Sequence record: NC_019406.1
DNA length: 64,000 nt
Reading direction: 5' to 3' (one strand)
Below, one piece after another: positions 59,240 to 63,355 of this stretch. Every line of letters starts with the position of its first letter. Position 1 is the first letter of the stretch. The notes under the pieces are model-generated. The model was not told where the DNA came from. It worked only from the letters and a program-made list of their open reading frames with translations, and did not search any database. A program made the position numbers and the translations under genes.

Positions 59240-59325
59240 ACGGGAATTCCAGAGCGGTCAAATGGGCTGGTCTCCAAAACCAGCGGCGCAAGCCTTCGGG
59301 GGTTCGAATCCCTCTTCCCGTGCCA
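59240..59325 (+). tRNA. trnW: tRNA-Trp(CCA) with a long variable arm
   Basis: ACGGGAA/TTCCCGT-G-CCA; CTGGT-CTCCAAA-ACCAG; extra arm GGC-GCAA-GCC. Confidence 0.85.
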
Positions 59326-61498: not shown

Positions 61499-61576
61499 CT
61501 GCGTGTAGCTCAGTCTGGTTAGAGCGCTCGGTCCGGAGCCGAGGGGTCGTAGGTTCAAATCCTGCTACGCAGACCA
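61499..61576 (+). tRNA. trnP: tRNA-Pro(CGG)
   Basis: CTGCGTG/TACGCAG-A-CCA; CTCGG-TCCGGAG-CCGAG. Confidence 0.9.
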
Positions 61577-61583
61577 AATCAGT

Positions 61584-61658
61584 CAGAGTCTGGCCGAGCG
61601 GCTAGGCACCGGTTTTGGGAACCGGACGAGGCGGGTTCAACTCCTGCGGCTCTGACCA
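61584..61658 (+). tRNA. trnP: tRNA-Pro(TGG)
   Basis: CCGGT-TTTGGGA-ACCGG; CCA. Confidence 0.9.
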
Positions 61659-61659
61659 T

Positions 61660-61736
61660 CAGTGTGTGGCGCAGTTTGGTAGCGCGCTTGCTCGGGATGC
61701 AAGAGGTCGCAGGTTCAAATCCTGCTACACTGACCA
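61660..61736 (+). tRNA. trnP: tRNA-Pro(GGG)
   Basis: CTTGC-TCGGGAT-GCAAG; CCA. Confidence 0.9.
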
Positions 61737-61742
61737 GTTTAA

Positions 61743-61815
61743 GCTGTCGCGTGTGGATTCACGCCGGCCCCTTGGTATGGGGCAGTAGAAGGTTCAATTC
61801 CTTCCGGCAGCACCA
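61743..61815 (+). tRNA. trnT: tRNA-Thr(GGT), atypical D-arm junction
   Basis: GCCCC-TTGGTAT-GGGGC; D stem directly abuts the acceptor stem. Confidence 0.8.
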
Positions 61816-61820
61816 AGTTC

Positions 61821-61890
61821 GCCGATGCTTCAGGGAAGAAGTGTCTTTCGTAGTGACGCCAGGAGGGTTCGAGTCCTTCCATCGGCACCA
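61821..61890 (+). tRNA. tRNA-Thr(CGT)-like, 70 nt, 3-nt D loop
   Basis: GCCGATG/CATCGGC-A-CCA; TGTCT-TTCGTAG-TGACG (U31.U39 mismatch). Confidence 0.6.
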
Positions 61891-61931
61891 GTTTTAATTC
61901 TTGATCCGAGGAGATCAAATGTAGACAAAAT

Positions 61932-62012
61932 GGATCGTGAGCTTAATTCCGGGTGGCCGGGACCGTCCTCTTAAGTCGAGAGCAAGTGGTTCGACTCCAC
62001 CACGATCCTCCA
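61932..62012 (+). tRNA. tRNA-Lys(CTT)-like with expanded D region and weak anticodon stem
   Basis: GGATCGT/ACGATCC-T-CCA; loop CTCTTAA; canonical T loop. Confidence 0.5.
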
Positions 62013-62018
62013 AAACAT

Positions 62019-62108
62019 GGGTGAGTTCTCCGAGCGGTCGAAGGGGAGTGACTCTTAATCACTTGGACGAAAGTCCCACCGTGGGTTCGAATCCCACCTC
62101 ACCCTCCA
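62019..62108 (+). tRNA. trnK: tRNA-Lys(CTT) with a long variable arm, U73
   Basis: GGGTGAG/CTCACCC-T-CCA; AGTGA-CTCTTAA-TCACT; extra arm GGAC-GAAA-GTCC. Confidence 0.85.
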
Positions 62109-62114
62109 ATTTAT

Positions 62115-62202
62115 CCCGGTGTGACGAAGTTTGGTAGACGTGCGAGTTTCAGATACTCGTGTCCGAGAGGGCGGGGAGGTTCGAATCCTCTCACCGGGAC
62201 CA
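62115..62202 (+). tRNA. trnL: tRNA-Leu(CAG)
   Basis: CGAGT-TTCAGAT-ACTCG; long V arm; CCA. Confidence 0.9.
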
Positions 62203-62209
62203 AATTAAT

Positions 62210-62296
62210 GCCCAACTGGTCGGAATGGCAGACGCAGGATACTCAAAATATCCGGACCGCAAGGTCGTCCCGGTTCAAGTCCGGGGTTGGGCACCA
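62210..62296 (+). tRNA. trnL: tRNA-Leu(CAA)
   Basis: GGATA-CTCAAAA-TATCC; CCA. Confidence 0.95.
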
Positions 62297-62303
62297 AGTT
62301 TAA

Positions 62304-62391
62304 CGCAGCGTGGCGGAGTCTGGTAGACGCGCCATCTTGAGAGGGTGGTGTCCGAAAGGGCGGGGAGGTTCGAATCCTCTCGCTGCGACCA
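62304..62391 (+). tRNA. trnL: tRNA-Leu(GAG)
   Basis: CCATC-TTGAGAG-GGTGG; CCA. Confidence 0.9.
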
Positions 62392-62399
62392 AGTTCTGA

Positions 62400-62474
62400 T
62401 CTGGTGTAGTCGAGTGGTTAAGACGCCGCATTGTGGATGCGGAGGCTCTGGTTCAATCCCAGGCACCAGTACCA
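62400..62474 (+). tRNA. trnH: tRNA-His(GTG), no G-1, U72/A73
   Basis: CCGCA-TTGTGGA-TGCGG; 3' end CACCAGT-A-CCA. Confidence 0.9.
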
Positions 62475-62478
62475 ATAC

Positions 62479-62553
62479 GGGGATGTAGCTCAGGGGTAGA
62501 GCGGCTGTTTTGCAAGCAGCGGGTCGGGGGTTCGAATCCCTCCATCTCCACCA
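62479..62553 (+). tRNA. trnA: tRNA-Ala(TGC)
   Basis: G3.U70 present; loop TTTGCAA. Confidence 0.95.
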
Positions 62554-62558
62554 ACAAC

Positions 62559-62631
62559 GGGGTATGCGCAGGGTCCGCAGGCATCCTTTGCAAGGAAGCT
62601 GAGGTGGGTTCGAGTCCCACATACTCCACCA
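62559..62631 (+). tRNA. trnA: tRNA-Ala(TGC) second copy, atypical D-arm junction
   Basis: G3.U70 present; D stem GCG/CGC abuts the acceptor stem. Confidence 0.75.
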
Positions 62632-62632
62632 C

Positions 62633-62722
62633 GGATGGTGAACCGGTCAGGCGCGCCGGGGCGGTTTCGAAAGCCGAGCGGACCTTCACGGGTTTGGGGA
62701 TCATGCCCTCCGCCATCCGCCA
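62633..62722 (+). tRNA. trnS: tRNA-Ser(CGA), non-canonical T loop ATCATGC
   Basis: GGATGGT/GCCATCC-G-CCA; loop TTCGAAA; long V arm. Confidence 0.8.
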
Positions 62723-62726
62723 ACAT

Positions 62727-62816
62727 GGAGAGCGAACCGGACAGCCGCGCCGGGACCGATTGGAAATCGCGTCGGACCTTCACGGGTCTGGGGATGGTGT
62801 CCTCCGTTCTCCGCCA
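62727..62816 (+). tRNA. trnS: tRNA-Ser(GGA), non-canonical T loop ATGGTGT
   Basis: GGAGAGC/GTTCTCC-G-CCA; loop TTGGAAA; long V arm. Confidence 0.8.
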
Positions 62817-62820
62817 ACAA

Positions 62821-62908
62821 GGATGTATGGCTGAGAGGCTGAAAGCGCCCGTCTTGAAAACGGGTCGACCGCAAGGTCGCGGGAGTTCGAATCTCTCTAC
62901 ATCCGCCA
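62821..62908 (+). tRNA. trnS: tRNA-Ser(TGA), canonical
   Basis: CCCGT-CTTGAAA-ACGGG; TTCGAAT; G73-CCA. Confidence 0.95.
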
Positions 62909-63321: not shown

Positions 63322-63355
63322 AAACGCCCCGGTTGCGAGACCGGGGCGTTCTTTT
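63322..63355. terminator. Bidirectional intrinsic terminator
   Basis: AAACGCCCCGG-TTGCGAGA-CCGGGGCGTTCTTTT between convergent genes. Confidence 0.8.

Follow-up and report, generated by a model that had tools for sequence, protein, structure and literature searches.

Threonine and alanine tRNA genes with a compact core in the tRNA array of Caulobacter phage CcrColossus

Caulobacter phage CcrColossus (JX100810 / NC_019406) carries an array of transfer RNA (tRNA) genes in which three members, tRNA-Thr(GGU), tRNA-Thr(CGU), and the second of two copies of tRNA-Ala(UGC), depart from the canonical layout at the core of the molecule. In each of them the acceptor stem, of 7 base pairs (bp), abuts the D stem, the U8-N9 connector is absent, and 3 nucleotides (nt) lie between the D stem and the 5-bp anticodon stem. 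Judging from these sequences and their homologues, all three genes probably encode functional elongator tRNAs with a compensated core, charged by the threonyl- and alanyl-tRNA synthetases (ThrRS and AlaRS) of the host. The window referred to below is the whole stretch of DNA analyzed, 64,000 nt, corresponding to bases 1-64000 of the phage with identical coordinates.

Layout of the compact genes and their detection

61499-62908, plus strand: tRNA array, with all genes on the same strand and all three compact genes among them.
61743-61815, plus strand: tRNA-Thr(GGU), 73 nt, compact core. Acceptor stem 61743-49/61805-11; D stem 61750-53/61760-63 (CGTG/CACG); D loop 61754-59 (TGGATT, 6 nt); linker 61764-65 (CC); G26 at 61766, facing A44 at 61784; anticodon stem 61767-71/61779-83; anticodon loop 61772-78 (TTGGTAT), anticodon 61774-76; variable bases 61785-87; T stem 61788-92/61800-04; T loop 61793-99; A73 at 61812; CCA 61813-15.
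61821-61890, plus strand: tRNA-Thr(CGU), 70 nt, compact core. Acceptor stem 61821-27/61880-86; D stem 61828-31/61835-38 (CTTC/GAAG); D loop 61832-34 (AGG, 3 nt); linker 61839-40 (AA); G26 at 61841, paired with C44 at 61859; anticodon stem 61842-46/61854-58, with U.U at 31:39; anticodon loop 61847-53 (TTCGTAG), anticodon 61849-51; variable bases 61860-62; T stem 61863-67/61875-79; T loop 61868-74; A73 at 61887; CCA 61888-90.
62479-62553, plus strand: tRNA-Ala(UGC) copy 1, canonical: connector U8-A9; D stem of 4 bp; D loop of 7 nt; one base (26) between D and anticodon stems.
62559-62631, plus strand: tRNA-Ala(UGC) copy 2, 73 nt, compact core. Acceptor stem 62559-65/62621-27, with G3.U70; D stem 62566-68/62576-78 (GCG/CGC), with an optional C62569-G62573 pair; D loop 62569-75 (7 nt); linker 62579-80 (AG); G26 at 62581, paired with C44 at 62599; anticodon stem 62582-86/62594-98, with A.A at 28:42; anticodon loop 62587-93 (TTTGCAA), anticodon 62589-91; variable bases 62600-03; T stem 62604-08/62616-20; T loop 62609-15; A73 at 62628; CCA 62629-31.

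The genes of the array are separated by spacers of 1 to 8 nt, and every one of them encodes its CCA end. A strong terminator-like hairpin (63323-63350) lies 3' of the array, after a small open reading frame (ORF). A sigma-70 promoter scan of the array gave no match, the scan being uninformative for promoters of the Caulobacter type. The canonical copy of tRNA-Ala(UGC) ends 5 nt upstream of the compact copy and served as an internal comparison.

A preliminary description of this DNA, made from the sequence alone, had proposed shifted parses lacking U8-N9 for the three genes, and both our reading of the sequence and the parse of a custom scanner reproduced these parses exactly. The D region of the compact genes spans 14 to 17 nt, including a D loop of 3 to 7 nt; the T loops read TTCAATT or TTCGAGT; and U33, A37, the discriminator A73, and CCA are normal in all three. 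Set to find acceptor and D stems in direct contact, with 3 nt following the D stem, the scanner found three matches in the window versus none in 100 dinucleotide shuffles, and no further match in the whole 280-kb genome.

Standard tools handle these genes poorly. ARAGORN misses all three, and two of the three fall under the gathering score of the Rfam tRNA model RF00005 (29 bits): Thr(CGU) scores 21.4 bits in Infernal with model positions 8-9 deleted, the compact Ala gene scores 24.0 bits, and Thr(GGU) reaches 30.0 bits only with its D arm skipped. A weak match of the compact Ala gene as transfer-messenger RNA-like (16.6 bits) is attributed to a shared Ala acceptor and T arm. At other loci the anticodon that ARAGORN assigns to the compact Ala gene lies at position 29-31 rather than 33-36, which makes it easy to spot this architecture in annotations already made.

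Thr(GGU) is unannotated in both the GenBank and the RefSeq record, the compact Ala gene is unannotated in the Colossus record, and Thr(CGU) bears the public label "tRNA-Pseudo / tRNA-OTHER"; thus the public record omits two of the compact genes and calls the other a pseudogene. Because some newer records annotate individual members (Thr in BL10 and Bajun; Ala in CcrPW, BL10, Swift, and Magneto), the genes are partly known already, but their architecture is so far undescribed: in the literature searched, of which coverage was incomplete, we found no description of it in phage tRNAs.

Homologues and the register of the D stem

Both Thr genes have homologues in 30 Caulobacter phage records, representing about 20 distinct phages, and these are present in all phiCbK-like Caulobacter phages. 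Both also occur in Brevundimonas phages, in Bajun by blastn and in Kabachok and Papperlapapp by a layout scan of their loci. The compact Ala gene is distributed more widely, occurring in the same Caulobacter records, in six Brevundimonas phages, in Mesorhizobium phage Cp1R7A-A1 and Microcystis phage Mwe-JY26, in IMG/VR contigs of 40, 102, 121, and 490 kb, in three Bradyrhizobium assemblies, and in a contig of a metagenome-assembled genome. It lay inside a large tRNA array in all eight of these loci that were run through ARAGORN. The phages that bear homologues share little DNA identity. The preliminary description had suggested a search for the same topology in other phage tRNAs, and it is there, in phages of Caulobacter, Brevundimonas, Mesorhizobium, and Microcystis. 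Pattern scans of IMG/VR for the two Thr architectures gave matches beyond the known Dolichocephalovirinae genomes (L040, L041, L043, and L044) that were not tRNAs, and several matches to the Ala pattern in bacterial genomes were chance matches.

MAFFT alignments (A1-A4) of the distinct sequences, 10 for Thr(GGU), 7 for Thr(CGU), and 15 for Ala, 32 in total, show the zero-linker D stem to be 100% paired in every family. Its pairs change on both sides at three of four positions in Thr(GGU) and at two of four in each of Thr(CGU) and Ala. The D stems of Thr(GGU) read CGUG/CACG, CGCG/CGCG, CGCC/GGCG, CGCA/UGCG, and CCUC/GGGG; those of Thr(CGU) read CUUC/GAAG, CCUC/GAGG, and CCUG/CAGG; and those of Ala read GCG/CGC, GCU/AGC, GGG/CCC, and GCGC/GCGC. 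Over the whole structure 92.9-95.2% of pairs are formed, compared with about 36-56% when the partners are slid, and 12-14 pairs show double changes; the covariation score was unmatched in 500 shuffles. Among the other helices, the T stems are 97-100% paired across homologues and the acceptor stems 92-100%.

When the possible registers were enumerated, the arrangement with a zero-base connector and 3 nt on the 3' side of the D stem was the only one fully paired throughout, in 10/10, 7/7, and 15/15 sequences. None of the 32 distinct sequences admits the canonical arrangement of two linker bases before the stem and one after it. In Colossus alone, Thr(GGU) and Thr(CGU) permit other D-stem registers, but those fail in homologues: the conventional register of Thr(GGU), with two linker bases and UGUG/CACG, pairs in only 71% of cells, and registers with one or two linker bases, as well as pairing of CUUC with the second GAAG in Thr(CGU), are broken. 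A reading of the genes as 8/4 or 9/3 molecules (base pairs in acceptor and T stem) was also ruled out comparatively, all three being 7/5 with a base 8 that is unable to pair with base 65. RNAalifold with no structure imposed predicts the same D stems, and folding of single sequences yields a cloverleaf in agreement for both Thr genes. The preliminary description had named alternative pairing into a conventional cloverleaf as one outcome that would overturn its parses; the comparison of registers among homologues contradicts such pairing.

The same description had counted a 3-nt linker after the D stem. Three bases do follow the stem, but the true linker is 2 nt, base 26 being engaged by base 44 in both Thr(CGU) and Ala. 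All seven distinct Thr(CGU) sequences (GC, AU, or UA) and all 15 Ala sequences (GC, AU, CG, or GU) form a standard 26:44 pair, and in two DNA runs, a phage-genome-sized contig and a wastewater metagenome, contigs from a relative combine 62581 G>C with 62599 C>G, which preserves it. Because base 26 is so paired, two unpaired linker nucleotides remain, and the anticodon helix has in effect 6 bp. In Thr(GGU) the pair is standard in only 4 of 10 sequences (C-G or G-C), the other six having G.A. The linker bases themselves are CC in Thr(GGU) and R-G in Ala, the G being invariant in 15/15, and they vary in Thr(CGU). A further pair, between the second linker base and the variable base that comes next, is possible in 9/10 Thr(GGU) and 13/15 Ala sequences but in only 2/7 Thr(CGU) sequences; because double changes are absent from it and it breaks down in Thr(CGU), we mention it only as one that may form.

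The conclusion of the preliminary description that selection rather than decay accounts for the shared layout is well supported, though by evidence other than the argument it gave, namely the conserved and covarying zero-linker D stem of the homologues. Its premise, that the three sequences are unrelated, is not established. Pairwise identity among the three compact genes is 51-61% over 49 structural positions, compared with a mean of 48% and a maximum of 67% for canonical neighbors, and the three may or may not share an origin by duplication, followed by a change of anticodon or identity.

Decoding, core structure, and alternative explanations

Identity elements, T loops, and CCA were described beforehand as intact, and they are indeed present in all three genes and conserved across homologues. 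G1-C72 and C2-G71 are invariant in both Thr families, in 10 and 7 distinct sequences, respectively, and G3.U70 is invariant in 15/15 Ala sequences. The anticodons together with A37, the G of the miniature D loop, and C56 and A58 of the T loop are likewise invariant across homologues, while U33, the T-loop motif TTCRA, and the encoded CCA are invariant or nearly so. In Escherichia coli, Thr identity is specified by G1-C72 and C2-G71 together with G35-U36. Threonine codons in the GC3-rich ORFs of the phage (rich in G+C at third codon positions) are 46% ACC, 44% ACG, and 8% ACU, together 98%; ACC and ACU are the codons decoded by GGU and ACG the one decoded by CGU. No other Thr tRNA of the phage was found by ARAGORN in the 64-kb window or by a strict scan of the whole genome, nor is one given in the original genome paper (PMC3556154).

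Neither a class-II ThrRS-type core domain (PF00587) nor an AlaRS domain was found in the phage, an enzyme of the pyrrolysyl-tRNA synthetase (PylRS) type not having been searched for separately; with no catalytic domain of ThrRS or AlaRS in the phage, charging would have to be carried out by host enzymes. Outside the window, at genome positions 208630-208992 on the plus strand (L045), a 464-aa frame matches PF01743, the CCA-adding enzyme/poly(A) polymerase family, with 75.8 bits, and the phage may repair or complete tRNA 3' ends although its tRNA genes encode CCA.

We propose a model in which the altered core preserves the dimensions of the molecule. In these genes the U8-N9 connector is missing and base 7 is followed at once by the D stem; the D loop is reduced to 3 to 7 nt while retaining an invariant G, the presumed equivalent of G19 for the elbow contact with C56; and two extra nucleotides lie 3' of the D stem, with the 26:44 pair lengthening the anticodon helix. 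Above the 5-bp anticodon stem, a canonical tRNA stacks seven layers, consisting of 26:44, four D pairs, 8:14, and 15:48, and a compact tRNA would also stack seven, consisting of 26:44, two linker nucleotides, and four D pairs. The D helix would be slid two steps toward the elbow, so that the anticodon/D arm could retain its length and the molecule thereby its L shape. With the helix so displaced, no connector would be needed after base 7, a D loop of 3 nt would suffice, and the spare bases would come to lie 3' of the D stem. Transcribed from a polycistronic array, the compact tRNAs would supply the commonest Thr codons and Ala codons. The sequences show the layout with its conservation and covariation, the kept identity and loop elements, the fit to codon usage, and the lack of a ThrRS/AlaRS-type domain; from them we infer transcription, processing, charging, the L-shaped fold, and layer-for-layer compensation.

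Several points weigh against this interpretation. A search of public data turned up no RNA data set from an infection; runs with related sequence proved to be metagenomic contigs only, from wastewater or soil, and those labeled "RNA" are flagged as probably DNA, so that expression, 5' and 3' processing, modification, and aminoacylation of the compact tRNAs are predictions from the genes. A stable L shape is an assumption, because U8 and its tertiary partners are missing. As a single sequence, the Colossus copy of the compact Ala gene has no cloverleaf as its minimum-energy fold, and folding z-scores are weak. Some stem mismatches are conserved: Ala 28:42 is A.A, A.C, or A.G in 13/15 compact genes (A4 columns 25:39), Thr(CGU) 31:39 is U.U in most genes (A2 columns 27:35), and 6:67 is U.U in the phiCbK group. 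Moreover, the compact Ala tRNA could be redundant in Colossus, because the canonical Ala(UGC) gene adjoins it. Conservation, covariation, identity and loop elements, and the match to codon usage combine to make decoding the best reading and decay of the compact genes very unlikely.

An adaptive explanation of the layout, which we consider unlikely, accepts working tRNAs and supposes that their core was selected to remove a handle used by attackers or markers of ordinary tRNAs. Candidates would be a host tRNA-targeting defense or toxin, the near-UV crosslink at 4-thiouridine-8, or a phage-driven shutoff of host tRNAs. Such an explanation gains from the persistence of the layout over large evolutionary distances and in varied hosts, including surface-water Caulobacter and Microcystis, from its recurrence in two Thr genes, an Ala gene, two Arg-type genes of Mwe-JY26, and a one-linker variant of tRNA-His, and from the conservation of the linker bases in Thr(GGU) and Ala. 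However, nothing in the data connects the layout to any such factor, and we know of no defense or nuclease that reads U8 or the connector. U8 and a normal core are retained by most tRNAs of the same arrays (Pro, Gly, Asp, Glu, Leu, and a canonical Ala that shares the anticodon of the compact one), so a general threat to canonical tRNAs is not indicated, and the number of such neighbors, including the Ala(UGC) gene 5 nt upstream, argues against a general pressure on canonical tRNAs. For the origin of the compact core we lean towards a neutral one, by deletion and compensating change, followed by purifying selection. Equally improbable in our estimation is the broader proposal of a distinct and recurrent structural class of elongator tRNAs of bacterial viruses, with repeated origins in mobile arrays (among Thr, Ala, and Arg genes and as the His variant), in which the D helix slid two layers toward the elbow and the connector bases moved from its 5' to its 3' side, and which was kept because modification enzymes, nucleases, UV-A crosslinking at s4U8, or other factors of host or phage act differently on the changed core.

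We regard it as more doubtful still that the genes are tRNA-like elements that do not decode, serving as processing punctuation of the array, decoys, or regulators and being neither charged nor used by the ribosome. Unusual structures are seen in adjacent genes of the array as well, so that not every member need decode, and the bit scores of the compact genes against the general tRNA model are low. Yet the conserved U33/A37 loops, anticodons, identity pairs, discriminator, and CCA would be unneeded for punctuation, and the Thr anticodons fit the two dominant Thr codons. Least probable is that the genes are decaying pseudogenes or conventional cloverleaves in another register, as the GenBank label "tRNA-Pseudo" at 61821-61890 and the alternative pairings available in Colossus alone (UGUG/CACG after a 2-nt linker in Thr(GGU); CUUC with the second GAAG in Thr(CGU)) might suggest; this is already contradicted by the comparative data, in which pairing and double changes far exceed those of the shuffled and slid controls and alternative registers break.

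Known compact tRNAs and other unusual genes of phage arrays

The closest precedents for the compact phage tRNAs are tRNAPyl and mitochondrial tRNASer(UCN). With tRNAPyl, particularly that of the Methanomethylophilus alvus type (PMC7609411), they share a very short D loop, a 6-bp anticodon stem formed by a 26:44-type pair, a short variable loop, a 7/5 acceptor/T branch, and, as predicted here, use by the normal translation machinery. In contrast to the phage tRNAs, tRNAPyl is without the G18G19 and T-psi-C motifs, reads UAG by a CUA anticodon, and has its own synthetase, PylRS; the phage tRNAs keep the D-loop G and TTCRA, have sense anticodons and Thr or Ala identity pairs, and have no dedicated synthetase. 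For tRNAPyl the same review (PMC7609411) describes nothing like the two additional unpaired bases that the phage tRNAs have on the 3' side of the D stem. Mammalian mitochondrial tRNASer(UCN) (PMC7609411) likewise has a compact core with a shortened connector 1 and a small D loop, an extended anticodon stem, a short variable region, and retained contacts between D loop and T loop, but it differs in having one connector base and no 2-nt insert after the D stem, in being organellar, and in having a dedicated synthetase. With canonical tRNAThr and tRNAAla (RF00005) the phage genes have in common all arms but the D arm (acceptor, anticodon, and T), as well as identity elements, U33/A37, and CCA, whereas they lack the U8-N9 connector and have three bases where the canonical molecules have the single base 26.

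Noncanonical tRNAs have a precedent in phage arrays of the same kind, since 8/4 tRNASer and tRNAHis, which are allo-tRNA-like, were reported from tRNA clusters of alphaproteobacterial phages (Mukai et al., PMC5389517). Those molecules are distinguished by an 8-bp acceptor stem and a 4-bp T stem, whereas the three genes described here are 7/5 and their peculiarity lies in the connectors of the D arm.

The original genome paper stated that no phiCbK-like phage has a Thr tRNA (PMC3556154), a record that is corrected by the finding of two conserved Thr tRNA genes in these phages, covering nearly all Thr codons. A 2024 paper stated that all known bacterial tRNAs are canonical (PMC11551756). To these the compact genes would add a natural, sense-decoding tRNA with a rewired core, having a zero-base connector 1 and a connector shifted to the 3' side and predicted to be charged by ordinary bacterial synthetases. 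Such genes are missed or underscored by tRNA finders. They bear on the basic question of how much of the tRNA core is truly required, and they are relevant to tRNA engineering, as compact or orthogonal scaffolds.

Related compact forms were also seen among His and Arg genes. A compact tRNA-His(GUG) is found in BL10 (L004:3898-3968), Rogue (L005:3916-3986), phiCbK (L006:3821-3892), and BL57 (L012:2224-2294). Its 4-bp D stem follows a single connector base (G8) and closes a loop of 3 to 4 nt; two linker bases lead to an anticodon stem of 6 bp, the variable loop has 3 nt, and position 37 is U. It is mostly unannotated; the His gene of Colossus (62400-62474) is canonical. In Microcystis phage Mwe-JY26, Arg(CCG) and an unannotated Arg(UCU)-type gene (L011:813-884 and L011:994-1065) have a zero-linker D stem, 3 nt after it, and C26-G44. 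No relatives of these Arg-type genes were found in the phage collection, so their parses rest on single sequences. Taken with the His variant, they suggest a wider tendency to compact cores in phage arrays.

Other genes of the Colossus array and its vicinity, all on the plus strand, are unusual in different ways. Two unannotated tRNA-Ser-like genes with CGA and GGA anticodons (62633-62722 and 62727-62816) combine an acceptor stem of 8 bp with a T stem of 4 bp; their variable arm is long, and TTC is lacking from their T loop. They are missed by ARAGORN and Rfam and fit the 8/4 tRNASer of Mukai et al. (PMC5389517). At 61932-62012 lies an 81-nt tRNA-like gene with an 8/4 branch and 7 nt before a 6-bp D stem with a 4-nt loop, resembling tRNASec; its anticodon stem is poorly paired around CTCTTAA, and its homologues in phages of the phiCbK type, in which that stem is good, are annotated as tRNA-Lys(CUU). 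The following gene, which is itself called tRNA-Lys(CUU) (62019-62108), has a length of 90 nt and, with its long variable arm, a type II shape unusual for Lys. Finally, tRNA-Trp(CCA) at 59240-59325 is 86 nt long, its 14-nt variable arm folding into a small hairpin; the homologues in BL10 and Rogue are of normal length.

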